DNA of 42,554 nt, taken from assembly GCA_013115145.1 (NCBI GenBank), contig JAAPAO010000287.1, positions 1-42,554 on the forward strand, read 5' to 3'. A model generated the notes under the pieces. That model worked only from the letters and a program-made list of their open reading frames with translations. It did not search any database and was not told the origin of the DNA. Origin of the DNA: Perkinsus chesapeaki ATCC PRA-425 (taxonomy: Eukaryota > Protista > Perkinsozoa). Each line of letters begins with the position of its first letter. The first letter of the stretch is position 1. Positions 1 to 41,982 of the stretch are shown in pieces. Made by a program: the position numbers and the translations under genes.

Positions 1-960
1 TAATATTATCAGTTATGTTCATCGGACATAAAAATAAATTATCATTTTCGGCACTCTTAACGTTCTTTTCATTAAATACTTCGATATAGGGATGCGCAAA
101 AGGCGCGGTTTGACCGGAAGCCGAAGATATCAAACCCAAAGTGATACGAAGCGCGAACCTCATAGACCTGGATGAACTAAGCAAAGCTGAGAGGACATCA
201 GAAGCTTCCGAAAATGTTCTTGCTTAAAACCAATGGAGGAACTTTTTAAAGTCGGATAACTCGGAAGGAGACACCAATTTGGGTAACACCCGGCACATTC
301 ACGAGACGAGCATGACACCTCACACCTGCCGTGGGTGTGAAACGGCTTCACGAAACTAATCTTGTAATATATGAGTCAGGACTACGCACAAGACCCGACC
401 CAAAGATGAGCTACTTAGTAAGCAGTGCTTACAAGGCCTTCTTGATGAAGGGACGGAGCTCGGCAATTCATCAGTAAATTCTGTTGGATGGCCGCAAGTT
501 CGATCTGTCATTTTTCTGCGGGAAAATATTTTTTGGCCCGCGAACCTTCAAGATACAACGAGACCAACTTTCGTATTTTTCCTAGTAACCCCAGAGTAAG
601 AGCTATCGATTGGTGCATAGTATGTGATCATAACCCCTCTAGATCCAGCTCGATAATTTGTTCGCACGCACCCACAAAGTATTAGTAAAGTTGTGGGAGT
701 CGTGATCGAGACGACGATTGATACTATCGGTAGGCGATGGGCGACTCTGGTAACACAATACCAAATACGAAGTAGTGCTTAGCGGGCAGGCAATACAGCT
801 TCGAGGTACAATGGCTCGAGACCTCGGAGACAAGTAATGAAGCGTAGGTGAAACTAACTTCTCACCAACAGTACGGATAAAGGATTCCAGTGAATCTTCT
901 CCTTTATCTAACTCACCGTACGCGTGCGGACTTAGCTCTTCCGCAGAAGAAGCGCCGCGT

Positions 961-995: not shown

Positions 996-1267
996 TACAA
1001 CAGCAGGGGATATAAAGACTCGTAGCTACATATGGCCGAACGGAATCGATTTACATACAATATAGCAGGCACATAGCCACACGGGCACACGTAAAAGGAA
1101 TAGAGGAACCTCCTAACGGGCCGGCGGCGCCGCTCGCTCCGCAATAATATGAATTGTTTGGTAGCAAAGAACCGTTACAACGCCAGTAGCGCTCGCCATT
1201 CTGATCGATTTTATTTTGTCGTCACGGTGGCTACCTCCCTCGCACAATTGATTACTGCGGTTGTTCA

Positions 1268-4200
1268 ATGGCCAAAACCAACAACGCCAAACGAGCACCA
1301 TCTAAAGGAGGATCTTCGAAGGGCTCCTCGATCACAAAGAAGAAATCTGCTGTAACGAAGCAAACCTCGGCAGCAGCCATCGTGGCCGCTAAGACTGCTG
1401 GTCTTACTCACGTACCTAGTATAACCTATAAAGACCTTAAAGTCGGCACACAACTCCAGGCTGCTGTACAGGATATCTCATCAGAGGCTTTAACACTTGA
1501 CTTGCCATTTAATAAGGTTGGCTTCGTCAAAGGTACGCGGGATTTGAGGAAAGAGCGGTATCAGATGTTATTAGGTGTTGCTAATATGGTGGATGAAGGG
1601 GACATTAGTAAGCATATTAAGCAGGCTAATGTGACATTGAAGAGCTATAAACCGGAACATAGATTCCATAAAGGTCAATTGGTGTCCGCTGTTGTGATAG
1701 AGAATGACGCTACTGGCCGAGAAGTACCGGCAGCTGCCCTCCCTGCATTTTAATGGTATCATTCAGGCCTCGGTTCACTTATCTTTGTTACCATCTGTAT
1801 TGAACGCTGGTCTGACCCCTAAGAGCCTCAGGAAAAATATGTGGTTGTCTGCCTCTGTCCTGACCGAAGAGGCTCATGGGTATGTTGGATACATTGCGAG
1901 GTTGGTGACAATTGCTTGGTTGGTTAGATACGTCCTGAGCTTTGGTATAGACGGCATTACTGGCTTCCTTAAGAAGAGTGAACTACCGGCGCATGCAGAG
2001 GGTGTTGAGACTGTCAAGGGCGACAATCCTTTATTGGAATTGTCGGTCAGAGATAACGATGCTCCCGAGGCCGACCAGGTAGGGAGGGGCCTGTGGGGGG
2101 GTCTGTTGGGGATGGGTTGGTTCAGATGAAGTTGGGGACATTGTTAAACGTACGTATACTTGAGGAGAATGCTGCTAATAAGACCAGCATACAGTGCAGT
2201 GCAAAGGTTGGCAAGTTGGACGAGGAGGATAAAATAAGTGAGGGAGCTGGGGATTGAACCGGGGACATATGGGATGGTAATCAGGCAACAACACCAGTTC
2301 AGCTGTGAAGATGAACTTGTTGAAGGTGGGCACGCCTGTTGAGGCCAAGGTGACCCATGTATGTGTGCCGATTCAAGCTGGCAAGAAAAAGGCCAATAAG
2401 AAAAGTGCAGGAATTGAAGTCGGGTTCATGGGGCCGCTAAAGGGTGAGGATCTGTGACGCCGTGACGCGTTGGTTATCTTTCGTTATTTAGGCGTAGTTC
2501 ACCAGTATCACTTGGTTCATCCGATACTTAATCAAACGGACATGACAATGTCAACCAACCTTAAGGTGAGGAATCTTCATAGTGCGGTTAGAGGGTATCT
2601 TTGTGCGCACGCGTGCTGATGTTTAGGTTGGACAATCGGTGAGTGCTAGAGTGCTGGCAGTTTTGGCCGATCCTTCGTCGCACAATCGAGCTGTCTACCT
2701 CACCCTTCTTCCCAACATTCTTCAATGGAAGACTGTTGAGAGTCAAGTGGAGCCTGGAGTCACATTGGAGGTATCGGTATGGGGACAGTTTTTGTGTTAC
2801 ATCTTCCTGGTCAGGCTGCCAGAGTTATCGATCTCATCCCAAAGGATTGTACTCGCTTCGTTGATGGTGGCAACTTGTTAGTGGCCCATGCTACCCGATG
2901 TGCTTTGCCATATAGACAGCCAGGAGCGGTGGGCAAGAAAACAGATGTCAGAGTCCTTGGATCAAATCTGCTAGAGATGACGATACAGGTGATATAGTTT
3001 ATTGGATAAAAATATGGTATGTAGAGTACCATTAATATTCCTCTATCTTGTCTTTGCCACGTATTCGCTCACAGTGCGCCATTTTCTTGTGGAAGATTTT
3101 TACAAGAATACAAGACATTTCCAGTGGAGATTCCAACTTCATTCCGGTTCGATTATGTAGTCGTTGTCGCTGTGTGTAGGTTAGCGCTGAGGAGAAGGTG
3201 TTGGCAGCCTCTGTGGTGAACCTCCAACAGCTAGCTCCTGGTATGGTATTCGACAAAGCTGTTATCGAACATTTCGACAACGAGAAGGGCCTTATAGTGA
3301 GGCTTAGTGACTTCGTTACTGGTAGAGTGCCGAAGGAGCAATGTACAGACCAGGGAAATCAGAAGAAGTTGCCGAAGAGGTATACTGAAGAGAAGGCTGA
3401 GATTAGAGTCAGAGTGTTGGGGGTAGACCCAGTAAGAAGACAGGTAATTGGAGGGAGCGGTATGGTAGCGGCTGAGAATTGCACAAAATTGGGGACAGCA
3501 GCGAGGGGAAATTTATATGCACAAACATTACCTATATATCGTAGTGATAATCTTTCTTCATTTCATGGCGAGTGACGGAATTTCTGGAAGACTGGAAAGA
3601 TTCTTCCAGGTTACCTTGACTGCCAAGAAGTCGCTGGTAGGCCGACCTGATGATGAGGAACCTCCCAGAGCTCTCACCAGGAACGCTGATGCAGCTGTTG
3701 GAGATGTGTTTGTCGGTTACGTTAGTAAAATGCTGGACCATGGTGGTTGCTACGTGAAGTTCTTCGGTGAGGCATTTGGACTGATGCCGGTGGTCAGCGA
3801 AGGGTGTGCTCATAGTGGAGCATATGTTAAGGTTAGGGTCACTAGCAAGAAAGATTCGCCTAAGGGAACTAGATTAAGGCTACAGCAGATAAACGGTATG
3901 GAGGACGCTGTAATAGGGGAGATTACTAAGATTGGGGATCTATTGGCGATCGAGAAGCTCGAGGGGCCGGCAAAGTGCAGTGGGGGCCGACAGGGGGTTA
4001 AGATCAGATGCGAAGGAGGGGTTGATGTGCTGGTGCCGGTTATGCAGCTGGCTGATGACCCGGATATGGCAGTGGCTGTTATGGAGCGCGTTGAGAAAAT
4101 GCAAGATTTGCAAGATTTCCCAGTTAAGAGCGTCCTTGTCACTGCAGTGTTGAACAATGGTACTATAGAAGGGACATGCAAGCCAGTTTTGGTTGAGGAC

Positions 4201-7200
4201 GCGAAGTATAGGGAACTTCTCGGTGTCAGTCAGGAGGAGATTCCGGCAAAAATTAAAGTTGGGGAAGGACTGGTCGGATTCGTCTCGAATGTGACGACGT
4301 TCGGTGCGTTTGTGAAGGTCGGTGGTATCTCGGGACTGGTACCGAAGCCTAAGTTGGCGGAGGGATTTGTTGATGAAGTGTCGGAGGCTGTAGAGGTGGG
4401 ACAGACTGTCACAACGGCGGTGGTGTCATCGGTGGATGCTGAGAGGAACATGTTCAAGCTGGACATGCAGCCACGGCCGATCGCTGGGGTAGCTGAGCTG
4501 GGCGCGAGAGAGCAGCTTCGTGCAGAGGCGAAACTGGCGCTGGAAAAATGGCTTGGGGGCGGGAAACTGCCAAAGAGAGGGGAAGTTGTTACGGCGACCG
4601 TGGGAAAGAAGAAACCGTACGGATGGATGTTGGAGCTGAAGGAGTATTCGGAGGCAGCTGGTCTGTTGTTGAAGCTGGAGGGAAGTGACGAGATCGAAAG
4701 TGGAAAGAAAATGAAGGTCTTAGTGGTCGATGTCGATGTGGTGCGATCGGTTGTTTATACGTGCAAAGAGCCCGAGAAGAGCCGGAAGAGAAATCGTGAC
4801 AGTGAGGAGTTTTGTGAAGGGAAGGTTATGACGAGCCGGGGAGGGTACAGCACGGTACTGCTCGGCAGTGATGTATTGCTGGTGACCAGCGGACCTAGGA
4901 GCATCAGCCAGGAAGATACTGTCAAGGTTAAGGTGCATGCAGGTGTGGGTGTGCTAGTTAATGAAGATAAAAAGGCAAAGAAGGCGCGTCGCTCCGCTGG
5001 GGAGGGTGGCAATTTCGCGGCGGATGTGTCGGTTGTTGAGGAGATAGAAGAGCTAGTGGATGGCAAGGAGCTGTCTATGGAGGTAGGAGGGTGGCATGGG
5101 TTCGATCCCGGGATGGTGCATTTTTAGATTGTCGGTCACACGCCTACTAGAGTGATTCTTGTTGCCGCGCCTAACATTAGGGCGACCATGCATGTGGCTC
5201 ACTGCCGTCCAGGCGTGGAAGGAAAGCTTGCGAAGGAGTAATAAATGCTTTGGAGGGGGTTTGAACCGACGACATTGTGTATGATAGACGTGGAGCATAC
5301 CCCGTTCATCTAGATACCCGATCGGTTCTGTCGTTCCCGTTCGCGTGCTTGGATCCTCTCGTGTAGCAGCTTACTCTGCTGCTGGTACTAGCCAATGGAA
5401 TATAAGTGTTAGGGATCCCAAGACAGCGAAGGAGGAGTGCAAGGTAAGGGAAGGGGGACACTACCACACAACACTAACAACCGCAACCTTTGCCTAATCG
5501 CCAGATCACGATTTCTAAGTTTAATTTTTTTCTCAAAAGACTGCTATTTTACATCATAGCTATTTGGGGTGCAGGGAAAATAACAAACGACTCGCATTGT
5601 TGAAGAGATGCTCGACATCTGGGGGTCAACAAGGGATGCATTAGAAAATTTATATATTCACATTTTCTGAGCGGTTTCGAGGTTAAGTAAGTCCACGATG
5701 CTCAGCAACCACTCTAGACGGCAGGTCGTATCTGTATAGAACATTTCTCTACCTGACCAGCCTTTGTAAAATTTGGCTGCTTCTATGGTCCGAGGGAAGT
5801 ATCTTTTCAAGCCCGCCTTTCCGACAACACACAATAGCTATATCTCCTTCAGTTGTACAAGTGGAACCCAGCATCCCTCTGCGGTGCCTCAGTGGTGGGC
5901 TGTGCGGTGTCCTCAGTCAACGAGGATGAGATGTTCGTTACTGTGGATGTGCCTGGTGTGGAGATGAGCTCTCATTCGCAACTGGAAGCTGGCAAACTCG
6001 GGAATATGACAAAGTCGCAGAAGGCGAAGTAAGCGGGAGGTCGTGGGTTCGAATCCTGGTGGAGATATTTTTTAGGTTTTTCCGTCAGCATTTGGGTGAC
6101 CATGAGGCAGCTAATAGCACTTGCAAGGTGAGGCAGAAAAGATTCTTTTGAGGTTGACTCGCGTGCCACCGTTGGGATTAGCCAATTCAGTAGACCTACT
6201 AGAGATACCCAAAATAGTTGCTGTTTTTAAGATTGCTTTCCTAGGCGACATGTGTGTGTTCCGACAGGTGATGGTCGGCAAAATCCGGGCTGTCGACTTG
6301 CCGAAGGCTGTTGAGGAATATAAAATCGGTCACGTCCTCACCGAGGAAGTCAGAGCGTTTGATGTGGTACCAAAGAAGAAGATAGAGCTAACTGCTGTGG
6401 AGGAGGTGATGGTCGAAAGTTCAGCGAGTTGAGGAGAAGTCGGTATGATCAGGTTTCCGAGGGTACAGTGGTCACCACTGCCCGAGTGTCTAATAACAAG
6501 ACTGCTCCGATCCAGCGGATGTTGGATCTTCCAGGCGGCCACAAGGGGAGATTGCATGCTACTATGGCGTGTGATGATTGGAGAGCAAAGTGAGGGCGAG
6601 GGGATTCGAACTAGGGATCTACGGATTACTGGAGGGCTGCTCTACCGCTGTAGTATATTTACTGACTTTCTAATGTTAGTCCGTTGGCACCATTGACTCC
6701 CGGTATGTTGGCACCAGCTGTGAAGGTGATTAGTGTTGGCAGCGGGCGCAAGCCGACTGAGGTCTGCCTCAAATCGATAAGCCAGGCGCACGTGAAGTCC
6801 CTTCCAAAGGGAGCCAAGGACCTGAAGGAAGGAGGAAAGGTAAGGTCGTGGGTTCGAATCCCAGGGGCGGTATTTTTATTGTGATAGGTGTCCGGCTATG
6901 TCGCCAGTGTGAGCTCCTCGGGTCTCTTCGTCGCCCTCTCTCCATGGCTCACCGGCAGAGTGTTGTTGGGCAATGTTGCGGAGCATCCAGTCACTCCTGA
7001 GGAAGCTGGAAAACTGTATGTGGATTTCATACCGACTTTTCCTCAGATTCCGATTGTTAGGTACCCCGTTGGGACTGCGGTGAAGGAGATCGCAATCACT
7101 TCTGTAGACGTGACCAAGAACCAAGTAAGGCGGAGCGAAGCGTTTTTTGAATTACGTTTTTTCGATAGGTCGGCTTGGCTATTGTAAACAAGGACAAGAG

Positions 7201-10200
7201 TAAGGTTGAGGAGATTGAAGAAGATGCGATTATGTACGGTCAAGTGTCCCGGAAGGACAGAGATGGCAAAGGACTCTTCGTAATAGGGAATAGCTCTTCC
7301 TCTGTTATTTATAACGCCGATGGAAGAGTGTAATAGTCGATTTAGGTCCGTATATCTGGTACAGGAGGGAGGCATGGATACTGTGCAGCGAAGGACTTGT
7401 TTGATGGCAAGGGGGATAATAAGGCATTGAAGGAGGCAGTGGGCAGTTACAAGGTGATAGAAGTGGGGAGGGTTGAGGAGGATTGGTTGTGATGTTGGTA
7501 GATCGGCACGAAAGTTCGTTGTCGGATTTTATCGGTTAAGGATGACGGAAAGATTAATATTGGATTGGCTAAGAAGTACTTCCCAGAGGATAATGATGTC
7601 GTGGTTGAGGATGCTGTTGGAGAGGAGGAAGAAGAGGATAGCGATGTTGAGATGGAAGAGGAATTAGCTGAGGTGGTTAAGGGTCGTGGCTGTCAGCCGA
7701 GTGGTCGTGGGTTCAATTATTTGTTTATCCATTTTATACTCAGACAAGTGAAGCTCCATCACCTTCTATTGAAGAGAGCGAAGAAGATGACGAGGAAGAG
7801 GAGGAGGAAGATCTCGAGGGTACGTCAGATGAGTGAGCTTGAAGGGTGTCCTACCGGTGCCACTTCACCCAACGTAAATCATTATTCAATTCCTGTAAAG
7901 CGTCGTCGCTCTTGGGCAACAGCAGCCGCCGCTTTGTGTTGTTGTCATTTGGTGGTGGTTTCAGTGAACGGCGGCGATAGCGAAGTGGGACAGTTTGGAT
8001 TTGCTGAAGGGGAGATGTTTGCTGAGGAGGAAGAGGATGACGTAAGTCCTGTAGGGGAGGGTCGGGCTATCTCACTGCGGTTAGTTCTGTGGTCCAGCAA
8101 TAGGCTCTCCAATGGATGGATTTTATATGTTATAATTTATACGGCTTATCTATAAGCTTAGGATTATAATTGTAGGATATGCTTTCATGGTTCATTCATA
8201 AGAGGGTTTCAGTCAAATCCACTGTAGTGTAATTATTACTAACTGTCTGACGTGTCACTAAGCATCTTTAAGATGTCCTAGAAGAGCGATGATGGATATA
8301 GAACGATAATGTCATGGTTGTTCAGGAGGAGGAGGACGAAGAGGCAGATGGTACCAATGGAGAGCCGGAGCATGACGCTATGGAGGACAGTGATGATAGT
8401 GAGGGAGAGGAGGAGGAGAAGGCTGGTAATATGGGGTACAGAGGAGAAACGCCAAACGCTATCAGAATGAATGTAGTTGCTGTCTTAACTTGCTCTGTGG
8501 AATATTTCCTGACAAAGATCAAATTATAAATCTGCAACAGGGACTAAATTCCACCCCCCTGCGGGTCACATCGTGGAGAGGTTGAGAGACTCTCTGGCGA
8601 AATTCAGCATTGTGAATACGGCGAATACTTTTGTAGAACTTCTAAACCTATTCGTACATAATAATTTGCCTCAGGTACTGGTAAGAAATCCGCCAGGCAG
8701 AAGGCCCGAGAGCGACGTGAGAGAGAGAAGGAAACAAGGGAGATTGAGTTGGCTAATGCTAGTGGTGATTGGAAGAGGAATCCAAGGGGACCTGATGACT
8801 TTGAAAGACTGGTAGTTTGGAGAGGATGATATCTGCATTCGATCGCCTGCACCATTTGACGAGGAGGGTAAATTCTGGTAAACTTTACGAAATTACGCGC
8901 TAGCTTCGAGAAGTGTCTTTCGTGTGCCAACTCGGTGAGGATATTTACAGCTACTAATCGAGCTCAGGTGCTAATGTCATGTAGTGCCTCTTCGACGCCG
9001 GACATGCCTAGCGCCTCCGAAGTGTGGATTCAGTATATGGGTTACTGGATGCAGATGGCCGAAGTTCAAAGAGCTCGAGACTGTGCTGAACGAGGTCGGC
9101 GAGAAGCTGTCGGTCTGAATTGACGGGGTGGTGGTCTGTTAGGTATTAAACAGAGGCTTGGATTTAGGGATGAGCAGGACAGGTTGAATTTGTGGATTGC
9201 ATATCTTAACTTGGAGGCCCATGTAAGAGATTTGGCGGGTGGTGATGGAGGTGGTGATGGACGGTCGTTGCTGCAGTTGTGTGTTGAGGGCGGCAGAAAA
9301 CGAGATGGTATCAAGAGAGTTGAGGATTTGTTCAAGAGAGCTGCGAGCTATAATGACTCTAAGAAAGTGTAATAAGAATGGTGGGAGGGGGCAGCCGTTT
9401 GTGTGCACGCTCAGGAGGAATGGTTCGGGGAGTGTTGCGTCACAGCTTACGTGATGACAAGCTTGTTTTACCCAACCATTTTCTCTGGGCCTCAAAATGA
9501 GCATATCGAAGCTTCCGCTCTGAGTTCATCAACTTTGTGTGTGTGTCAGGCATATGGCCATGTGTGACGTATGGTCTCGAGCAGGAGCGGAGGACCTTGC
9601 GTTAGATATGTACAAGAGAACGGCGGAGAAGTTTGGACATTCTAAGAAGGTTTGGTTGAAATATTTAGAGTGAGTTTGGGGGGGGGGTTGGAATAGCTTT
9701 AGTTGTCGAATTTAGGTTCCTCTATTCGACTGGGAAGTTGTCTGAGGCGCGCCAGAATTGTCTGCCCAGAGCCTTGAGATTAACCGAGAAAAGGAAGCAT
9801 GTAATAAAAGGGTCTATTGGGTGTTATAGAGCTGTCTGGGCTACGATAGAGGTTCATGAAACAGTTTCGGTACGGAGGTTATTCTCATGATTCGACGTGC
9901 GCACTCGTGACACCAGATATCCTTTGATTCGCTGATTCTCATGTTATTTCTGTTCCCTTAGTCGCTGATAGCCACGAGAGCGGCTAAGTTAGAGTACAAG
10001 TATGGTACGGTGGAGAGAGGGAAGACTATCTTCGAATCGTTACTTGCGGTAATAATATGGAAAGGATAGGTCGGTTGTGATGGAGGTGATTGTTAGTCCC
10101 AACCTAAGCGTCTTGATATATGGTCGGTGTATCTGGACGAGCACATCAATGCTAATAAGGAGGACCCGGACGCAGTTCGTTCGGTGTTTGATAGAGCTAT

Positions 10201-10705
10201 CACTCTGAAGTGGGACGAGGGCGATTTTGATTGTTATTATATGGTGGCAGGTTGAAACCAGCAAAGGTTAAGTTCTTCTTTAAGCGGTGGGTCGGTTTTG
10301 AGCAGTTGTATGGAGATGTTGAACATCTCGAACTTGTGAAGGATAAAGCAAGAGGGTAATGTTGCCAGAGGGAAGGCAGCGGTCTTGGGGCTGGCTGTCA
10401 AAAAAGTCGAACTAGTTATTGAATTTGGTAAATAAATTAATAATCTCATAATACTCATTATTAACTCACCAAAATATCATATGGGACTCCAGCTTGTTGG
10501 AGGTGTGCTTTTTGGAGTGTACTTATTATGGGCGAAGTATAAAGGGTGCACAGTTTCTCTCAAGTGAATAGAATAAAACCCTTCAGTGCAGTTAGCTCGT
10601 TGGTTCCATGTAGATTATTGGTTGATAAACTCGGTGGTCAGGTATGTTATGGCTCTTGAGAAGAGTCGTCGGGCCGATGATATCGGTGAAGAGGGCGAGG
10701 AGTAG
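1268..10705 (+). CDS. RRP5: rRNA biogenesis protein RRP5 (multiple S1 domains, acidic linker, C-terminal HAT repeats); multi-exon, 3' end tentative
   Basis: Hand-spliced exons give S1 motifs (EEAHGYVLSFGIDGITGFLKK; GFVSNVTTFGAFVKVGGISGLVPK; VSGYVASVSSSGLFVALSPWLTGRV) and the RRP5 HAT region (DFERL...SEVWIQYMGY...RLNLWIAYLNLE...KFFFKRWVGFEQLYG). GT-AG introns remove the in-frame stops. Confidence 0.95.
2238..2284 (-). pseudogene. 47-nt RRP5 intron containing an antisense tRNA 3' fragment
   Basis: Splicing is needed to avoid an in-frame TGA. Reverse complement reads GTC-CCCGG-TTCAATC-CCCAG-CTCCCTC-A-C (T-loop/B-box, 12 nt, A73). The final AC is the GT donor. Confidence 0.6.
5083..5127 (+). pseudogene. 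45-nt RRP5 intron containing a tRNA-Gly-like 3' end and T-run
   Basis: ATGGG-TTCGATC-CCGGG-ATGGTGC-A-TTTTT-AG. The ...TGGTGCA end resembles eukaryotic tRNA-Gly(GCC) 3' ends as I recall them. The T5 run abuts the AG acceptor, and the flanking exons are in frame. Confidence 0.7.
5238..5313 (-). pseudogene. 76-nt RRP5 intron containing an antisense degenerate tRNA
   Basis: Reverse complement ...CAATGTC-GTCGG-TTCAAAC-CCCCT-CCAAAGC-A-TTTATT. Splicing joins KLAKE to YPIGSVVPVRVLG. Confidence 0.55.
6029..6075 (+). pseudogene. 47-nt RRP5 intron equal to the 3' half of a tRNA-Thr(AGT)
   Basis: A|GTAAGCGGGAGGTCGTGGGTTCGAATCC matches the intact tRNA-Thr(AGT) at 37610-37682 at 27 of 29 nt. It continues TGG-TGGAGAT-A-TTTTTT-AG. 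Unspliced, the frame hits TAA immediately. Confidence 0.8.
6590..6679 (-). pseudogene. 90-nt RRP5 intron containing a near full-length antisense tRNA relic (6591-6653)
   Basis: Reverse complement CAGCGGTAGAGC-A-GCCCT-CCAGTAA-TCCGT-AGATC-CCTAG-TTCGAAT-CCCCT-CGCCCTC-A-C has canonical spacing from D-arm to position 73, but the stems do not pair. Confidence 0.7.
6840..6887 (+). pseudogene. 48-nt RRP5 intron containing a tRNA T-arm, 3' end and T-run
   Basis: GTA-AGGTC-GTGGG-TTCGAAT-CCCAG-GGGCGGT-A-TTTTT. T-stem pairs 4/5. Splicing joins KEGGK to VSGYVASVS. Confidence 0.75.
7673..7743 (+). pseudogene. 71-nt RRP5 intron containing a tRNA D-loop, anticodon arm (GTC, Asp-like) and T-loop
   Basis: GTGGTTAAGGGT-CGTGG-CTGTCAG-CCGAG-TGGTC-GTGGG-TTCAATT shows exact 5-7-5-5-5-7 spacing, and the anticodon stem pairs 4/5. 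The first 11 nt are identical to the D-loop region of the tRNA-Leu at 36118-36128. Confidence 0.7.
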
Positions 10706-19405: not shown

Positions 19406-19460
19406 CTGTATGTCGCTGCCCATTTACCAGCGCTTGTTCAGTTGAAACTTGCGCGCGATA

Positions 19461-19495
19461 GACGCGAGTTCGAACCCTGGCACGTGTATTTTTAG
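19461..19495 (+). pseudogene. tRNA 3'-end-like element upstream of ArfGAP
   Basis: GCGAG-TTCGAAC-CCTGG-CACGTGT-A-TTTTT-AG has the same register as the RRP5 intron elements. Its AG lies 41 nt before the ATG. Confidence 0.55.
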
Positions 19496-19515
19496 TCTAT
19501 TTTTCCCTCGACTAG

Positions 19516-22595
<3,080 letters not shown>

Positions 22596-22722: not shown

Positions 22723-25700
22723 ATGAGTACACCTACGGAACCGTCTGCTCCTGCGGCAGCAGCAGAGGCGTCCTCGAATAATACGAATAACGAAGGTGAA
22801 TCCAAGAAGCCTGAGGTTGAAGATGCTGTTGAAAGGAGAAAGAGGCAGTTGGAGAATTTGGGTAATGATTGGGCAAGGGAGCGGTATGAGTTTATATTCT
22901 TGATCGGTGGATGTACGGTATTGAGGTATAATAGTTTGATGAAGAGAAGCGTTTATAGTAAATCATGTATCAACTATATCACGTAGCGCTTGGACGCTTA
23001 GATAAAGACTATAATTACCAACATGTGCGTCTGGGAGAGAATTCGGAGATTCGGTAGCACCGCATCATTGCCACCAGATTGACGACAGCGTTTGCTCGGT
23101 CGATCACACCCTGCCCATAAATAGTGAGATGTGCACACCATTAACCTTTGATGGAGGGTAAATGTCATATCGCATACAGTACGCGCAGGTGCCAAAAATG
23201 CAGTAAAAACGTTTTGAGAAAACTCGACCTGTGAAGCATTTTAGCGATACAACAGCATTAAGAGAGCATATACACAAAATTTCAGATTCATATGTGGTCT
23301 GGTTAAGAAACTATGCCGGTGACACCAAACGCGCGCTTTAGATTGCGCGTACTGTAGAACCTTAGCAATATTGGATATTGCTAGGGTATCTATTTTATGT
23401 ATGTTATGAACAATCGGATGTTGGGGCCATGCAGGGTCGGACTAAGATACGCGTTACCGATGAAGAATGGCGAGTTTTGAGCGAATGTGTTTCTGAAGAA
23501 TCAGGAAGGCGTTCCGGTTGACCTGGACTATGACTTGTTGTTGTTCTGTAACTAGGTCGATCTGGTGGTGTTTACATTCCTCCCTTCAAGTTGGCAAGAA
23601 TGCAGGCTGAAGCTGCTAAAGAAGCCAAGGACCCTTTTGGTGACCAGACGGAGGGGGGAGGCTATAGTATTGTTGATGTTAGGTGCGGAGGTTCAACGGC
23701 AGGAGTGGGAGGCATTAAGGAAGTCTATCAATGGATTGGTTAATAAAGTGTCTGTTGGCAATATCAAAGATATTGTGCGAGGAGAACTCTTTACTTTGAA
23801 CCTCCTTAGAGGGAAAGGTCTCTTCGCTAGAGCTGTCCTAAGGGCTCAGATGGTAGGGGGTGGGTTGGTCGGATATGGGATTGAGTTGGACACGTAGGCC
23901 TCCCCCGGCTTCACTCATGTATATGCGGCATTGGTGGCGGTGGTTAACTCCAGACTGCCGGAGGTTGGAGAGCTTATTGCTAATAGGACGGCCTTGATGT
24001 TTCGGTAGTAAAGGGGCTTAGCGGCGTCGGTGGGGAAAGTTCGTATGGCGCTCGACGTAGATGGTCTGGTCGGAGGATGATTGGCTGCTAAACGTATTGT
24101 CTAATATCATGCTCAGTAAGTATTGTTGATATATTTTGCATGAGCTTCAAACTAACATAGCAAGCAAAAGCGATTGGGGTTGCCGTTGCTGTATCAGATG
24201 TAGACTTCTTCGTTATTATGTTATAGTCCCAAAAACCTGTTATCGCCTACTCTAACCTATTCACCTGTATTACCACTTGAGGCCCGTTTGATTCAAACAC
24301 ATGGCATTTGTGAGTTTCATTTCCATATTTTTCTGTTTAGGCGTGCCTATGCTAGAAATGATAAGATCGTTCTGACGGCAGCCTGTAAGATGCTGGCACA
24401 TCTGATGAATCAGAAGGTTGTGTCGGAGTAAGTCGTGCTTAATGGAGGGGGAGGAATCTTGCCCCAGTATCGACGCCTTTGTGGGGGATTCATCTTGCAA
24501 TCCGTCAACCTTTCGGCTCGTGGAAACGAGCCATAGTTCTTGACGTGGCCCAACAAATTGATCGTCAAGATGTAGATCTCATGGATGCAGGCTACTGGGG
24601 GCCGTTCGAGCTGGGCGTGAAGCTTAGGACTTGAAAATATGGTGAATTAGGAACTCAGCAAGATGGATATAATCGTCATTTTGACGGTCAATGGGTCGGA
24701 GCCCGTATTTTTGTTCTTCTCCGAAGCATGGTTGCTTGATTTTTCAGGTTTACTATTATGAGAGTCTGTTTGTTGTTTTTGGAGGAGTTGACCACAGACA
24801 GTGTTGAGGTATGTTGCCAATTGCTAACTGAATGTGGTCAAGTGTTACAAGAGATGAATAAAAAGGCAATGATGATATTAACATCGAGGTTGAGAAAGAT
24901 ACTTCATGAAGGTAGGAATGGTGGTATCTTTAAAATCTATGTAGTGCGCGGCCGCAGAATTGAACCAAGAAGTTATCTAAAGTCTTATCCGGCCTTTTTT
25001 CATCTTAAGAATATAATAGAGTTTCACCCGTTATATGTAAAATGCCAATGAAAAACGAAATTCGTAATTCGCAAATACCTGCTGGTGTTATTACATTCGT
25101 ATGTAATATGCGCCATTTGCGGGTGAATTTCTTTTCGAAACTCAGTTATATGCTCTTCGCTATTGTCTTGGGGACTCGAAGGATTCTTTTCTTTCGACTT
25201 GGTTGGGTTACCGGTGGACCGGTTCAAATCCCGACTGGGTTCTGATGCGAATGTCCTTCAGGTCAACTTGACAACAAACGCGTTCAGTATGCCATCGAGA
25301 ACTTCTTTGCTATACTTCGGCAGAATTTCGCCCCTGACCATATTGGAGTTGTGCCAGAGTTAGAATTGATAGACGAGGAGGACCAGTAGGAGGAGGAGGC
25401 CTCCAGGAGAGGGCTATGGGATATGCACGCATGCGTTTGGTAGGTATACCCATGACATCGCTATAAGAGATGGTAAAATTGACGGTGAGAATATCTTGAA
25501 TATTTTCCGAGCGGAGCCACCTGAGCAGTAAGCCTTGGGGTAGAGTGGGTGGTTGAGGAGGTTGGTTAAGATACAAAAAGGAAGAAGGTGAATGGAAGTC
25601 ATTTAGCAAGTCCTTGTTGGGAGGGGAAAGTAGCGAGTCTGAAGGGGAGAGTGATGGTGGTAAGTTTGTGGACATTATTAACTGTATATAAGACCCTTAA

Positions 25701-28518
25701 CCTCTTCCTCTAAGACTCTTTGAAGGTTGAGGCCGATATGTGTGTGCTTATATCTGTATTGTTTGATATTATTAAACGTATTATACTTATTTGCTCCGGT
25801 AGACAGACGTATTAGATGAATCGGTTGTGCGCAGAAATCAGCTTTTCAAATCTACTCTTCCTCAATCGCAACCCAGCATTTCTAAATTACTTAATTTTTA
25901 ATTTAGAAAACTTACTTGGATTTTTAAATTCTAAAAATTACTTTATACCGAATCTACTTCTCGTCGTCGTCGTCCTCATTGCTACTTCACCTCGCTAGCT
26001 TGGTATCCTTGATGTCACTGGCCTTGTATAGCTCTATTATCCTTCTCAACTCGCTCATCTTGATCAGTATTTCAACTTTTTCTTACATGGCATTTTGTTA
26101 CTATATTCAGAGTCATCATCATCATCATCATCTGAGGACAGTGAGGCTGAAGAGGAGGAGGAAGGAGAAGAGGGGCAACCGAAGGCTACACAGGACATTG
26201 TCGATTACACCGAGCAGGCTACGGTCGACCTACGAAGAACAGGTGCTTTGCATCTAAGGCTTTATTGAAGGAGATTCTACTTTTATTTTCAGTGTACTTA
26301 TGCATCATGTCATCGGTCAACTTTGAGGAATGTGTTCATAAGATTCTAAGTCTTAATATAAGGGAAGGGCAAGAGAAGGAGGTAGGGGGGCGGAGCGAAG
26401 CAATTCATGTTTGTTATTTTTATTCAGATATGTACAATGCTTATCGATTGTTGTGCGATGGAAAGGACGTTCAACAGCTTCTATGCCCTACAGGTAGGCG
26501 GAGCGATGCAAGAATCTTCGTCCTTGTCTTTTACTGATGTCATCAACGGGTTGAAAATTTTTCGCCTAATAAGCTTCAAAACTAATAAACTTCAGCATTG
26601 CTTGCTTGTTCAGGCCGAAAGATTATGTCGATTGGTCGAAGTGTATCGGCAGAATTTCGAGGCTAACTTCTTGGATCAATACGAAACATGTCATAGACTA
26701 GAGACCAATAAGATTAGAAATGTTGCCAAGTTCTATGGTCATCTCCTGGCTACAGATGCTATCAGTTGGGAGGTAGGCATGGTGATGGACGGGTTGAGGG
26801 GTAGAGTGGGATTGGTAGGTATTGAAATGCATACAGTTGACAGAGGAGACCACAACTTCTGCTACACGTATATTTATAAAGAACCTCATACAGTATCTTA
26901 GTGAGGTGAGGGAGAATACGGTATGAGATTTGGTGATAGATAGGTTGGAGTAGGTATGGGGCTTACGTAAACTATATCAAAGGCTTAACGATGCTAACTA
27001 TGAGGAGGCATTGGCGGGTATTCTACCGAGGGACACGGCTCATCATATGAGGTAGGGAGATAGAAGGGGGAATGGAAAATGAGATTCTGATGCATTAGAT
27101 TTGCTATTAACTTCTTCTCGGCTATCGGATTGGGGGCATTGACAAAGAAGCATCGGCAGTTACTAGAGGAGGTAGATGGATCCTGAGGGGCGGTAGAGTA
27201 GGGTGGATGCAGGTACAGGCGAAGGAGGCGGCTGAGAGGGCAGCTGCTCAGATTGATGATGATGAGGAGGACTCTAGTAGCGATGAAAGTAAGATAAGTT
27301 GTCATCATGCTCGTTCGTTTGGGTTGAGGAATGACACTCGTGGTAGTTTTGGTGATTTACTTTCGCGTGACTTGGTGGGTGTTTAATTTTATTACTGACA
27401 ACTGCTTAAGTAGAGAGTGAAGCATCTTCCTTGATTGGATGCGTTACATTGTCTTTTCTGTTTCACCGGACATACTGTTGATACTCCGATAATGAAGGGT
27501 TAATGTGGACGCTGAAAATGGGGGCAGCTTAGGAGATTTGACTCTCTCTCTCGGATTTTACTGTATCCTAGGATTTCCCTTCTTTCCTGGCAGCACTTCA
27601 ATAATTCCTGTTTGGCAGGTTCGTCGTCCTCATCGTCCTCATCGTCATCTTCATCCGACTCCGACTCTGACAGTAGTAGTAGTAGCGAAGAGAGTGATAG
27701 TGAGGCAGAGAGAAAGAGTAGGTCACCTATAAGGCGACGGAACCGGAAGGATACCAGAGTTAAGAGTGAGGATAGGAGCCCTAGGGCTCGAAGGAGTCAA
27801 AGCTATTCAAGGAGGAGAAGGAGGCAAGGTGAAAGGAGGGATAGATCGGCTGAAGGAGACCGTCGACGAAGTGAGCGAAGGGATAGATCGGCTGAAGGAG
27901 ACCGTCGACNNNNNNNNNNNNNNNNNNNNNNNNNNNNNNNNNNNNNNNNNNNNNNNNNNNNNNNNNNNNNNNNNNNNNNNNNNNNNNNNNNNNNNNNNNN
28001 NNNNNGAGCGAAGGGATAGATCGGCTGAAGGAGACCGTCGACGAAGTGAGCGAAGGGATAGATCGGCTGAAGGAGACCGTCGACGAAGTGAGCGAAGGGA
28101 TAGATCGGCTGAAGGAGACCGTCGAGGAAGCGAGAGAAGGGATAGATCTAACGAAAATAGGAATAGGTCTAGCGAACGAGAGCGTCGAGGAGGAGACCGT
28201 TATGAGGAGAGAGATGAGCGTCGTCCTCGAGGTGGAGTGAGGAGGCATGAAGGATATGATGGAGGGGACAGCCGCTCTTACCATTATTACCATGACGACG
28301 AGGGCGACAGGAACCAGGGACGTAGACATAGTGGAACTGAAGATAGAAGGAAGAGTCTTTCTCCTCCAAGAGCAGTTGGCAGGAGAAGGGAAAGATCTAA
28401 TAGCCGAGAAAGTGGAGGTGAGAAAAAGAACCCTTCTTCACAGCTCCATTCCTTCGAAGTACTTTTGTCGCCTACTAGCTCCCCATCGTTTCGAAGGATG
28501 GGTGGATGGAGCCGCTGA
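22723..28518 (+). CDS. CWC22: Pre-mRNA splicing factor CWC22 (MIF4G and MA3 domains, RS/RD-rich tail); contains an assembly gap
   Basis: [56 protein letters not shown] and CHRLETNKIRNVAKFYGHLLATDAISWE are characteristic CWC22 motifs. Confidence 0.95.
27831..28150 (+). repeat. 42-nt coding tandem repeat (ERRDRSAEGDRRRS)n in the CWC22 tail, spanning an N gap (about 27910-28005)
   Basis: Unit GAGCGAAGGGATAGATCGGCTGAAGGAGACCGTCGACGAAGT repeats on both sides of the gap, so copy number is unknown. Confidence 0.9.
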
Positions 28519-29951: not shown

Positions 29952-30150
29952 AGTGCTTTTTTAGCGGTCACTACAATGCGAACTCTAGAAGTCGAGTAAG
30001 TTGGTCTGTCCTATACAGGCATGGGTGGTTTTCANNNNNNNNNNNNNNNNNNNNNNNNNNNNNNNNNNNNNNNNNNNNNNNNNNNNNNNNNNNNNNNNNN
30101 NNNNNNNNNNNNNNNNNNNNNNNNNNNNNNNNNATCTAATTTTCTCGTTA

Positions 30151-36352: not shown

Positions 36353-39300
36353 TCACATGTCGAACTTTATGTCAACTGACTTCAACGTATCTTTTTTGGC
36401 ACCTCGCATGCCAGCTAAATAACGCTTATGAATGACTGGATTGGTCCACTTATCATCATATGTGTTTGTAGTAACATCTTTTGGAAGGTAAACCTGAGGT
36501 TCGCCCAGAATCGTGGTGACTGTTTCTTTCCGCACTGCTGTTGTCCGATCCCACCTGAGAGTCGCTGTCCCTTCTGAAGGCCGAATAATCGGTCTGTATG
36601 CTTCTCGTTCTCTTCTGCCGCAAAGCAACAGCCTTCAGTAATTTCTCTCGCATCCTCCATTCGTTCCACCTGTCATCAACACCGGGAAATGCATACTCCA
36701 CCTCGCCATCGGCTCACTCGTAATCCTTATCAGAGCTCCTCTCTGGATGCAAATCGGTCTCGATTGCTACATCGACTCGAACCTGTTCGACCTTCCCTTC
36801 TACATAAGGTGCTGGAGAGCCTAAAGCAGCAGCATCTCAGAGTAGTGCACTGTATAACCACCTTGACTGCCTTCACGTGCAGTTATACAGGCTGGAACGT
36901 GGGGGAAGTCCGTCTGCATCCTGAAGAAAAAGAACGCTATATCGGCCAACAACAGACGAAGCCACTACTGAAGGAAGGGAATGAGGGGAGGCAGCACACG
37001 ACAGAGAGCCTTCACAGCTTCTATGTAGTGGTTATGGCTATTCATGAACCTATACGAGAATCATCACCGGCCAACGACCAATGGGGATCACCTGTTCACA
37101 GCGGAACGGGACGAGCATGCCACCAAGGATACATTATCATAGCCAAGGCGCACCAAGCCATGCTGGGGGTCGCCAGGAATTAACAGGCCTCGGCCTCCCA
37201 CCAGGGCAATTGGGCAATACCCCTGTACGAAGGCAGTGACTAATTAAATAGCTTGGAATGCCTTTACTTGATACTTAAGTTTCGTTCCTTGATACTCCCC
37301 ATAGCTTCCAGGCTCCAACAGGTACAGTTCACCTGACGTGTTCTCAAACAGACCGGCCAACCATGTATTACCTCCGTCACCACTCTCTTTGTTGTGGGGC
37401 TTCCCCTCGGTTTGGTCCTCCTGAGATTTAGCGGAAATATGGTAGAAATAAGAATGACCGCTCACCTTCCACCAGCTCGGGTCTGCTCCTTGTGCCTTTC
37501 GATCTTCCACAGATTCCAGTAGCTCTTCGGGCAGAGAAGGACTCACACTGAAACGTGTGGAGAGTAAACAATCAAAGATAGCCTCATGAAGACAGACATA
37601 GAGCATCAAGCCTTCTTAGCTTAGTTGGTAGAGCACCCGCTTAGTAAGCGGGAGGTCGTCGGTTCGACTCCGGCAGAAGGCTTATTTTCCCATATCCTCC
37701 ATGCCACGGAGGCTTCTTTTCCTCTCCCTATATGTATTACCTATAAGTATCCAACTGCTTCAGCACCAACTCTGCCAATTTAATTCGATCCTCCATAAAC
37801 AATAGCTCCTCCCGACAACTGTTATAATACCTTGTCAACGAGTCAAACCGTGGATACACCTGAATTTGTTCAACTGAAATTCGCAACAGCCAGAAGAGAG
37901 AGCATCACATCCTCCTTTGCAACAGCCGTCTTGGTGCCTATTCCGATACTGACCAACTTTAAACACTCGCTGAACTGCATTCGAGAATTATACAGTCGAG
38001 CCAGCGCCCTGAGATAGTATGCTTGTAACACTTCCCATCAATCGCCACCAACTACTTTTCCACATCATCGCCGATCGATTGCAAATAAAGTAAGCTTTGC
38101 CTTAGATAGCAGATGTCCTGTGCGAACCGGCTCAGATTCCCAGTCGCCTCGGAATCTATCCATGTACCACCTCACACGACTGTAACCCTTTTACTACCAT
38201 CAAACATTGACACATCAACAAGAGTATCAACCAGCTCAGCTATCTCCGTACATTTATCTGCATCACTTTCACTGTACACCCATTGCACTTTACTGCCCAC
38301 CATTTATCCTTTGCAGCCAGGTCTCCTTTTCAACTGCTTTCCTGCAATCCTCCGCATTCCCAACCACCTAGCCCAACATATTGCCTCTCTTCCATCCGCC
38401 GGTTTACCTCCTCAACCCAAAGTCCCGCCCCACTCCAGTCACCCGCTGCCGAGTGAAAAAGTCTAATTCCATGGACCAAACTGACGAGCTCTCGTAGTTG
38501 GCATATCTTAGCACAGTGCTTTCTTGGTAGCTTGTACGGGTTAAGCTACCTTTTCCGAGTCTGTTAACGAACAAAATGATTTAATGGCCACACGAGGCAT
38601 CACCGAATGCAACGCCGGACCTAGGTCTTGCCGTATCTACCACAAGCTCGATCGCATTGATCTATATCTACTTTATTTTAATAATATATGACCTGTAGTT
38701 CTGTGCCTTTATCAGGTATCCTTCCCGAAGGTATAGCCACTATTGCCGCTGTCACTAGGAGCTCATGAACAAGCTTGTATCTGCCCTCACACTACTGGTC
38801 TCCTCCACCATTGAGCTTTACATTAAGTTAAAGCCATTGAAATCCATCCTTCCATTAAGCTCATTTGTCTGCTCCACGATCCTCCTTATCGATGACCCTA
38901 TCGCTTCATTCCGCGCCAGTTCTCGACTGAAGGGCAACTGCTTGTTGCCAGACGTATGCCCCTCCCCGATCTACTTAACAGCCTCCTGTTCGATATTATT
39001 ATAATGGTAATTCAAATCAGTCTGCAATCTCATGGTCTCTAGGGAAGGATCATCCCTCATTGATAGCCGTTCAATAGACTAATAACAGATCATCCGCCCA
39101 ATGTTCATTAAACCAATTCTGAGATTCAGAATCGATTCCAGCATCCCATTTTACGTGTAAAAAGCAGTTCTGGAATCGATTCTGAATTTCAAAATCGGTT
39201 TATCGAACGATCCCCCGGTCCAATACTATACAATGGTTACCTTCTCCACGGCAGTGTTGGCGTCCTCATCACTGAGCTCGCCCTTTTCCATATAAAACAC

Positions 39301-39814: not shown

Positions 39815-41982
39815 ATGTCCACCCCTCTAGAAGGCTCCCCGATCATATGCGATAGCGGTTCAAGGCAGGTGCCGACGCTTTAGGATGGTCGGTCAAGTCC
39901 ACTTCTCAGCATGATCAAGTGTGGCTTCTATTCCTCATCTACTCCAGAGGTCCATATCCCCGCAGCAGTAGCCCGTCGGACACTAGGGTAATATGGGACG
40001 TGTTACGGACATGAAAATGATCGTGGGCCGTTGGTAGGATAGATGGACTGTTCTTCGATACGGATAGTGATGATGAAAATGTAGCGCAGCTTGGAAACAA
40101 ACTCACACGTAAACGACATACGGTAATGACCGATGTTTACGAGCTTCGTTATTGAAATGTAGCCGGAGTCATCACCACAAGGCCAACGAGGGGCTTCCTC
40201 CTCATCGTCGTCATCAACACTTGTGGGCTACGAGGCGTTGTCGACGGCAGACCAATCTGGCATTAATGCTAGCTATCCTCTTATTAATGGAGTTGTTACC
40301 GATTGGGATGATATGGTGCTGATATGGGATCATACCTTCCATCAGCTACTAACTGCTGCTGGACGGCATCAGAGAGCTAAGAGACTTAAGACACTTGATG
40401 GTAGGACCGGTGCTGCGGGTGAGTGCAGTGTCGTCGGCTGTTATCATGACCGTTCTTCCAAATACATTATTTATTGCAATATATATCACCGTAAAAATAC
40501 GCGTTGTACACACATCTCACTCAGAGCAGTAATGGCTTTATAGAACTCACTCTCTTTTGGTTGTGACCCACCTCCATCGTTCTGCGGAAGCCAGCCAATC
40601 TACTACGTACTGCGGTTTTTCAATAATTAATGTATCTCCTGTCTCCATAGAGAGCCTTGACACTATTCCTCCCCGTCTACTTCGACCCTGGGGAATCTTT
40701 GCTGTGGTAGGTTGCGTAGGAGCAGCTGCGTTCGGTGATGATTCTGACGATGACTGGATGGATTCGTTGAAGGGCGGGAAGATAGTTCAAACTGAGGCAG
40801 CGTGCAATCCTACCAAAAATAGGGAAAGGATATTAACTGAAATGTTTGAACGGTAGTAGTAACGGCGTTCTGACTTATTTTGAATCTTGTTATGGTTCAA
40901 CCAAGATACGGCTTCGGAAGTGTTAACGTATCAGTCCAAGCGGTGCTCTCGCTTTTGGCCACGGTGAGCTGCTGCTGCTGGTGGTGTGTGTCTTGTAGTA
41001 GTTGTGGAAGTGTGTTAGGGTCAACGGACAGGTATGGTTGTTGATTCTGGTGACGGAGTGACCCATGTTGTGCCCATTTATGAGGGGTTCGTACTTCAGC
41101 CATGTGTCAGAAGGATGGATATTGCCGGAAGAACTATAACTCGGTGAGAGAGAGTGCAACTTGGCGGCGATCATCATGTGACAGGCAATTGGCGTATCTT
41201 GTGACGCACACGTCTGGCAATCGGGTGAAGGGGTTGAAGCATCTCAATACAGTAGTAAAGGACCGGATAAATTAAAAGGGAAATTATTATTATTGCAGAT
41301 GAGGCAGTGGAAAGAAGACCACTGTTTTGTTTCGGGGAATCCCGTTAAGAGCAAGATGGACGCCAGAAGAAACAGAGTAAGCTCTTTTAAAATGGCTATG
41401 CTTTGGTTTGAACCTGTGCCTCGTGAATGAGGTGTTGTTAGCTTAACCAATTCGCCAAACTGCCTGATGGAACGGAGGTTCCCATAGGAGCTGAGCGATA
41501 TCTGGCTCCAGAGATTCTGTTTACCCCGGCTTATGCTGTGGATGAAGTGTTCAAAGATCAGCCTGGAATCCAAGGCACCATCGTCGAGTCTGTACGTTGC
41601 TGGCTTCGCTGATCGGCCTCATGAGTGTCGCGTGGTAGATCGACATGTCACCGCTGGACATCCGAGACTCGCTGAAGCAATCGGTGTTGCTCTCCGGTGG
41701 CAACACGCTCCTGAAGGGCTTCGGCCGACGACTTAACGCCGAGCTCGGTCGAGATTTCAGTGGAAAGGTTAAAGTGGTGGAAAGGGATGATAGAATGTAG
41801 AGTTGAGGAGGGAGTAGTCTATTTCTATTTATTTGTTAAGGTTTCTTCCGTATATAGGAGCTTGCACCATGGCTGAGATACACAAGGATGACGACGCCCC
41901 GGAAATGTGGATCACTCGTGAAGAGTTTGACGAGCATGGTCCATCGGTGGTACACAGACTGATCCCGACACATCATCGTTAA
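39815..41982 (+). CDS. Actin-related protein, Arp2-like, with large insertions; multi-exon
   Basis: [114 protein letters not shown]. Confidence 0.9.
41377..41441 (-). pseudogene. 65-nt Arp intron containing an antisense tRNA 3'-end-like element
   Basis: Reverse complement ACAGG-TTCAAAC-CAAAG-CATAGCC-A-TTTT has the same register as the RRP5 elements; the T-stem does not pair. Confidence 0.45.

Follow-up and report, generated by a model that had tools for sequence, protein, structure and literature searches.

Why should short spliceosomal introns of a protein-coding gene carry the promoter motif of tRNA genes? The question is raised by an RRP5-like gene of the protist Perkinsus chesapeaki ATCC PRA-425 (Perkinsozoa), which lies on contig JAAPAO010000287.1 of assembly GCA_013115145.1; the stretch of 42,554 nucleotides analysed here (positions 1 to 42,554, forward strand) is referred to as the window. 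A sequence-only reading of this DNA had noticed a T-loop/B-box in seven introns of the gene, designated here by their first positions (2238, 5083, 5238, 6029, 6590, 6840 and 7673), and had offered three hypotheses: that intronic tRNA genes had decayed and shrunk, that inserted tRNA fragments had created the introns, or that B boxes had been retained as sites for the RNA polymerase III (Pol III) factor TFIIIC in a ribosome-biogenesis gene. We favour a reading in which the introns hold decayed, shrunken tRNA genes whose B-box region is selected, most plausibly as a TFIIIC site, and we put the probability of this reading as a whole at about 0.48. Its parts do not stand equally firm: the content of the seven introns very probably descends from tRNA genes, real constraint on the B-box region is probable, and TFIIIC as the cause of that constraint falls slightly short of an even bet.

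The window is eukaryotic DNA with very short introns, and the gene in question (1268..10705, plus strand) encodes S1 repeats and a C-terminal HAT-like part in exons separated by about 35 short introns, the reading frame being the sole guide past 9839, including the stop near 10703. An S1 domain is present in the large exon. A 491-amino-acid exon used as query retrieved one protein, P0151 (74% identity), whose contig (L001; 8.8 kb, Logan assembly) is collinear with the window from 1247 to 9839 across the RRP5-like gene; it served as the guide for the intron calls and is the sole relative compared. No RNA-seq run was found to contain the stretch, and two small runs from the same species placed no reads on it. 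All 26 introns compared have GT..AG ends and lie at equal position and phase in the window and L001, none of them being missing in the relative. When introns 1-23 are spliced out, a stop-free frame of 1426 amino acids in the window and 1439 in L001 is obtained, with 79.7% amino-acid identity, and the spliced 1426-residue product is collinear with P0017 (1777 amino acids; Pfam S1_RRP5, OB_RRP5_4th and HAT), a protein from an intron-less transcript contig. With several S1 domains followed by HAT repeats, and collinear with a known RRP5, the host gene is, as judged from its sequence, RRP5 / PDCD11. The seven introns of interest (65, 45, 76, 47, 90, 48 and 71 nt, in the order given above) all belong to the verified set of 26, and their shared positions, together with the stop-free coding sequence in both species, identify them as real, shared GT..AG introns, as had been claimed. 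Perkinsus introns are reported to have GT/AG ends and to be mostly under 100 bp long (PMC3101222).

Taken alone, the 9-mer GTTCRANNY is a weak signal, with 46 occurrences in the window (live tRNA genes included) against about 21 expected. The claim that all seven introns contain a T-loop/B-box stood for the six in which this 9-mer is found; in 7673, GTTCAATTA fails its last Y, the orthologue in L001 reading GGTTCGAATCT. The perfect B box, GGTTCRANYCC, occurs six times outside tRNA genes, compared with 0.30 expected and a maximum of 2 in 200 shuffles. Verified RRP5 introns, with about 5% of the window's length, account for five of these six perfect boxes. The box of 6590 is a 10/11 match and that of 7673, degenerate in the window, is 10/11 in L001. 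On sequence, the RRP5 introns of the window hold five perfect copies and one 10/11 copy of the B-box consensus by which extra-TFIIIC (ETC) sites are recognised.

The spacing around the box is that of a tRNA gene. Counting tRNA positions from G53 of the T arm (7673 being re-read with G53 at 7711), we found an A at position 73 in all seven RRP5 elements and in the elements at 19461, 41377 and 24965. The A73 previously noted is thus present in all seven and at 19461 and 41377, but the base is forced in 2238 and 6590, whose 5' splice GT is complementary to A73-C74, and A73 is therefore not independent evidence in these two. A T-run starts at position 74 in 5083, 6029, 6840, 19461 and 41377, as had been stated, and also in 7673, and TTTATT stands there in 5238; in the four sense RRP5 relics the runs are T5, T6, T5 and T4, each right before the host AG. 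The real tRNA genes of the window show an equal layout of A73 and T-run. Position 73 is not followed by CCA in the relics, which together with the T-run points to copies of genes with a Pol III terminator and not to retro-copied mature tRNA. The earlier description of largely unpaired stems with kept spacing proved accurate: T-stem pairs average 2.9/5 in the relics, as opposed to 5/5 in the live tRNAs of the window and about 2.5 by chance, with A73 in place in all seven. An A box is absent from five of the seven.

Consistent with such decay, the Rfam tRNA model gave no match in the relic introns (whole window permissive; 2200-7800 even at E<=10), and ARAGORN at default settings found no tRNA in them. 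Lowering the ARAGORN threshold to 65-75% produced 71-227 calls, which were essentially noise and were not used. No cloverleaf is thus seen in the relics by covariance or heuristic models and, the cloverleaf being gone, they would make no tRNA. A search for snoRNAs in the conserved introns yielded insignificant Rfam matches only.

What each relic retains of a tRNA gene is as follows. Intron 2238 (2238..2302) is filled entirely by an antisense relic of positions about 11-74 (minus strand), whose B box at 2250-2260, GGTTCAATCCC, is a perfect match and which has an A-box-like CTGAACTGGT at tRNA spacing from it; the 16-base word GGATTGAACCGGGGAC is common to L001. Intron 5083 (5083..5127) holds a sense relic of positions about 44-79 (plus strand; B box 5099-5109, A73 at 5120, T5 and then AG) and has A73 and the 13-base word TGGGTTCGATCCC in common with L001. 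Intron 5238 (5238..5313) holds an antisense relic (minus strand; B box 5257-5267) in which A73 and the following TTTATT form the host 5' splice site; its box, GGTTCAAACCC, is perfect in the window and decayed in L001 (5/11), with the spacing kept. Intron 6029 (6029..6075) holds a sense, Thr(AGT)-like relic running from position 35 to the terminator (plus strand; B box 6046-6056, T6 and then AG), the host 5' splice sequence GTAAG being tRNA positions 35-39; this relic matches the tRNA-Thr(AGT) gene of the window at 27/29 bases over positions 34-62 (z=15), in register from A34, and at only 4/11 over positions 63-73, and in the L001 orthologue it has decayed. Intron 6590 (6590..6679) contains an antisense, Thr(AGT)-like relic of positions about 18-74 (minus strand; B box 6602-6612, retained in L001 as GGTTCGAACCC), which aligns to the same tRNA-Thr(AGT) gene ungapped from G18 to C62 at 31/45 bases (z=8). 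Intron 6840 (6840..6887) holds a sense relic of positions 44 to about 85 (plus strand; B box 6851-6861, A73 at 6872, T5), and its L001 orthologue retains AGTTCGATCCC and A73, then TTT. Intron 7673 (7673..7743), finally, holds a sense relic of class II (Ser/Leu-type; plus strand), which opens with a class-II D loop, GTGGTTAAGG, matching the tRNA-Leu(TAA) gene of the window, and ends with a degenerate B box (7710-7720), A73 at 7731 and T4; the 13-base word TGGTCGTGGGTTC is common to L001, whose box is intact. At the border of exon and intron (7661-7682), the exon bases right before this last intron read TTAGCTGAG, which satisfies the A-box consensus TRGCNNAG and is suitably spaced from the D-loop-like intron start, within an acidic low-complexity linker; as read from these letters, the relic may extend into coding sequence, although the fit could be chance.

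The elements thus show the B box, the 12-base spacing from it to the discriminator, the T-run and the in-register likeness to real tRNA genes by which relics of tRNA genes are recognised. Their sources were diverse: among 11 relics, pairwise identity is 80% at positions 53-61 and drops to 25% at positions 28-43 and 32% at 62-72, and this want of similarity outside the T arm indicates different parent genes and not one repeat family, in agreement with the earlier view that the elements do not form one family of short interspersed elements (SINEs). The tRNA genes available in the window for comparison are of Thr and Leu type only.

We next consider how the relics have fared between the two species, which are far apart. 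At four-fold sites the window and L001 are 34.1% identical, compared with 26.7% for random sequence, corresponding to about 1.6 substitutions per site and thus near saturation. Ordinary orthologous introns are unalignable (identity of 0.56, against a non-orthologous background of 0.54), whereas relic introns reach 0.66 outside the B box and 0.77 within it, and the B boxes of four introns are identical at 40 of 44 bases. The longest words common to orthologues measure 16 (2238), 13 (5083) and 13 (7673) bases, those of other introns 4-9, and the maximum in 608 non-orthologous comparisons, each with at least one non-relic intron, was 12. The intronic B-box matches of L001 lie in the orthologues of 2238, 5083, 6590, 6840 and 7673, with one further match straddling the end of another intron and two in exons. 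Orthologues also have odd loop variants in common (TTCAATC in 2238, TTCGATC in 5083), which argues for descent and not convergence, and implies that the relics are older than the species split and that their cores have been kept. The B-box-only ETC sites of yeast are conserved among related species; here, with L001 as the relative, the B box is intact in both species for four of the seven relics. Conservation of the B-box region beyond the neutral level is the part of the third hypothesis that held, and it fits a retained TFIIIC site.

Relics are not confined to RRP5. A sense relic (19459..19495, plus strand) with B box, A73, T5 and AG lies upstream of the start codon of an ArfGAP-like gene. 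A 350-nt intron of a CWC22-like gene (24912..25261, plus strand), with the frame open across the junction, contains B-box matches belonging to two relics, one antisense and close to the 5' end of the intron (about 24945-24975), the other sense and close to the 3' end (about 25212-25242). A 65-nt intron of an actin-related protein (ARP)-like gene (41377..41441, minus strand; frame likewise open across the junction) contains an antisense relic with a B box at about 41404-41414, A73 and T4. Two further candidate introns were set aside, one at 11951 being unsupported by the reading frame and one at 35701-35741 having doubtful reading-frame support. In a minus-strand gene, a predicted 191-nt intron (37551..37741), with canonical splice sites (GTAATA..TTTCAG) and frame-consistent exons running to a stop codon, encloses an intact tRNA-Thr(AGT) gene (37609-37683, plus strand; detected by ARAGORN and Rfam, 67 bits), which is antisense to the intron and is flanked by about 58 nt of it per side. 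The tRNA-Leu gene of the window is not intronic.

Several features of the region stand apart from the relic introns themselves. Between 29537 and 31416, at least 11 copies of tRNA-Thr genes follow one another in tandem with a 171-bp period and intermixed CGT and TGT anticodons; the array is interrupted by an assembly gap (30035-30133), and its last two copies are degenerate. The C-terminal tail of the CWC22-like protein, rich in Arg, Ser, Glu and Asp, is encoded by near-identical repeats of about 48 nt (27850-28130, with an assembly gap at 27910-28005). Upstream of the ArfGAP-like gene (19459-19540), the T5-AG end of the relic is about 45 nt from the start codon, and going by position and letters its T-run and AG might act as an acceptor in the 5' untranslated region or for a spliced leader. 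Within RRP5, three- to ten-fold length differences separate orthologous introns (5444-5852, 2989-3179, 3444-3609 and 6128-6267 in the window; 7383-7846 and 5878-6027 in L001), for example 409 vs 50 nt and 48 vs 464 nt; repeats that would betray a mobile-element insertion in the long intron 5444-5852 were sought, and none was convincing. A second recurrent intron motif, CGGAGCGAAGC, occurs in three introns belonging to two genes, 4-10 bases past the GT of the 5' splice site (7131-7141, 26391-26401 and 26499-26509, with minus-strand matches at 22540-22550 and 4986-4996); allowing one mismatch at most, it has 5 matches against 0.56 expected, is not a clear B box and, in intron 7125-7168, is included in a 13-base word identical in L001.

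Some of our observations weigh against selection on a B box read by TFIIIC. First, constraint is not uniform, the box being broken in three of the seven relics (5238 and 6029 in L001, 7673 in the window). Second, conservation outreaches the box: in 7673, TGGTCGTGGGTTC (positions 44-56) has been kept despite the broken box of the window, and in 2238 most of the intron, not the B box alone, is conserved, which a bare B-box/TFIIIC model does not predict. Third, the bases of 6029 outside the B box differ little from those of the live Thr-AGT gene while the orthologue has decayed, a pattern suggesting renewal or late death and not steady selection. Fourth, the constraint rests on comparison with one relative; no third species was found by a protein search with the exon between two relic introns, with the last 260 amino acids of the large exon as query or by a metagenome scan, and the representative library contained no close relative. 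The conservation beyond the box and the behaviour of 6029 keep two alternatives alive.

The stronger of these, which we consider unlikely, is that the relics are neutral and have either died recently or been patched repeatedly by ectopic gene conversion from the very many live tRNA genes. The section that all tRNA genes have in common (variable loop and T arm) would then stay near consensus without selection. The contrast in 6029 between positions 34-62 and 63-73, with its decayed orthologue, is what such patching would leave behind. Donors would be plentiful: P. marinus is reported to have unusually many tRNA genes, with five tRNA types alone accounting for over 500 copies (PMC3706591). The window itself contains the tandem tRNA-Thr array, and non-orthologous relics have words of 15-17 bases in common, e.g. 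GGTCGTGGGTTCGAATC. However, orthologues retain idiosyncratic loops and non-consensus flanks, such as the 16-base word of 2238 with its unpaired T stem, and the decayed boxes have gone unrepaired. The seed identity available is moreover only about 11-19 bases, and the usual minimal pairing lengths for gene conversion lie far above this.

A further step less likely is an aid to splicing at the RNA level, with the T-run acting as pyrimidine tract, the T-loop adenosines as branch site, or the motif as a site for an intron-definition factor. In the sense relics the distance from A58/A59 to the 3' splice site downstream is indeed 22-30 nt, and AG follows immediately on the T-run; relic introns are also more conserved overall than the others (0.66 vs 0.56), and some splice sites are built from tRNA positions, as with GTAAG at 35-39. 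This account meets its difficulty in the antisense relics, whose motif adjoins the 5' splice site, is separated from the 3' site by 40-70 nt and reads differently as RNA. In addition, 19 of the 26 verified introns do without any such motif, and TTCGAAT is, in our reading, a poor match to a branch-site consensus.

That intron ends fall on tRNA features (GTAAG in the anticodon loop, AG after the T-run, GT complementary to A73-C74) could also be taken, along with the A-box-like TTAGCTGAG in the exon right before the D-loop-like start of 7673, as a sign that coding sequence received tRNA-gene fragments which then turned into introns, as introners do. This second hypothesis of the sequence-only reading found no positive support in the data, and we hold it to be improbable: the relative, from which silent sites have diverged to saturation, has all 26 introns, meaning that no intron was gained since the split and that any such origin would lie in the deep past; the relics make up no multi-copy family; neither terminal repeats nor target duplications were noticed; and, as we read them, the exon bases that would represent the 5' acceptor fail to pair with the 3' acceptor strands of the relics. 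A link peculiar to RRP5 and ribosome biogenesis, with B boxes tying RRP5 expression to the Pol III state, is the remainder of the third hypothesis and is very improbable: relics occupy 7 of about 35 RRP5 introns, a share somewhat above that of neighbouring genes, but they also occur in unrelated genes of the window (introns of the ARP-like and CWC22-like genes, and upstream of the ArfGAP-like gene), which leaves a specific link unsupported.

Decayed intronic tRNA genes with a selected B-box region thus remain our preferred reading, its first element, the decay of intronic tRNA genes, being the best supported of the three hypotheses in view of the alignments of 6590 and 6029 to Thr-AGT and of the intact Thr(AGT) gene in a predicted intron. 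Old spliceosomal introns would at first have contained whole tRNA genes, of various kinds and on either strand, a situation that a neighbouring predicted intron (37551-37741) appears to show today. After the death of the tRNA gene the intron would have shrunk towards a minimal size of about 45-90 nt. What was left would be mainly the last third of the gene, from the variable loop and the T arm with its B box, through the 3' acceptor strand and the discriminator A, to the Pol III T-run. Where the relic is sense, this T-run, lying right ahead of the host AG, would now serve as the pyrimidine tract; where it is antisense, the 3' end of the tRNA would adjoin or form the host 5' splice site. Such coincidences of splice sites and tRNA positions may have arisen by deletions that joined an old splice site to the relic, and in 6029 microhomology at GTAAG may have been involved. 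Purifying selection would then act on the B-box region as double-stranded DNA that docks TFIIIC without Pol III, as at ETC sites. A reader of double-stranded DNA is the simplest explanation, given that relics occur in both orientations, that the RNA differs between these and that the stems are lost.

Our search of the open-access literature brought up no account of tRNA remnants inside Perkinsus introns. The closest precedent is the ETC sites of Caenorhabditis elegans, which are over-represented in introns; 45% of them coincide with repeats, and these repeats are nearly always CeRep3 putative tRNA pseudogenes (PMC6950938). Akin to these sites, the RRP5 relics are intronic, derived from tRNA pseudogenes and endowed with tRNA-promoter motifs without a working tRNA gene. 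The C. elegans sites retain both boxes, A and B, and are members of a dispersed repeat family, as opposed to which the RRP5 relics are each unique and mostly without an A box, fill most of a minimal intron and are shared at saturated silent divergence, their TFIIIC binding being putative. The intron-nested tRNA genes of Caenorhabditis (PMC3342880) are likewise Pol III genes within introns of RNA polymerase II (Pol II) genes, in either orientation, and the Thr-AGT gene at 37609-37683 appears to be the one live example in the window; the seven RRP5 elements differ from them in being dead, having lost the cloverleaf and their 5' parts while the intron contracted around what remains. TRNA-derived SINEs that bind TFIIIC in genes (PMC3744447) also place tRNA-derived B boxes inside Pol II units. 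The relics, however, show neither the family likeness nor the multiple copies of SINEs, nor the head with A and B boxes joined to a tRNA-unrelated body or tail; they consist of the 3' third only and end in a Pol III terminator. Introners are intron-generating mobile elements of algae, fungi and dinoflagellates, and as with introners a recognisable related sequence fills introns of unrelated genes; unlike introners, the relics form no multi-copy family of near-identical copies (25-32% identity outside the T arm), show no presence/absence differences between the two species (26/26 introns shared) and have no terminal repeats or target duplications that we noticed.

If the B boxes are bound, the relics would be a natural system of tRNA-gene promoters outliving their genes inside Pol II introns and, Perkinsus being a culturable and transfectable protist, the idea is directly testable. 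The reuse of tRNA-gene parts as splice signals (terminator as pyrimidine tract, anticodon loop as GTAAG) bears on how minimal introns are shaped, and annotators should be aware that permissive tRNA or SINE searches in this genome will flag introns. In its widest form the proposal would be that Perkinsus has a genome-wide layer of TFIIIC docking sites in its spliceosomal introns, each being what selection has preserved of a dead intronic tRNA gene, with a Pol III factor marking Pol II gene bodies; this is a tentative suggestion about which we are more doubtful than hopeful. If true, the docking sites could have roles in chromatin organisation, transcription pacing or intron definition, and dead tRNA genes would be a regular source of minimal-intron material.

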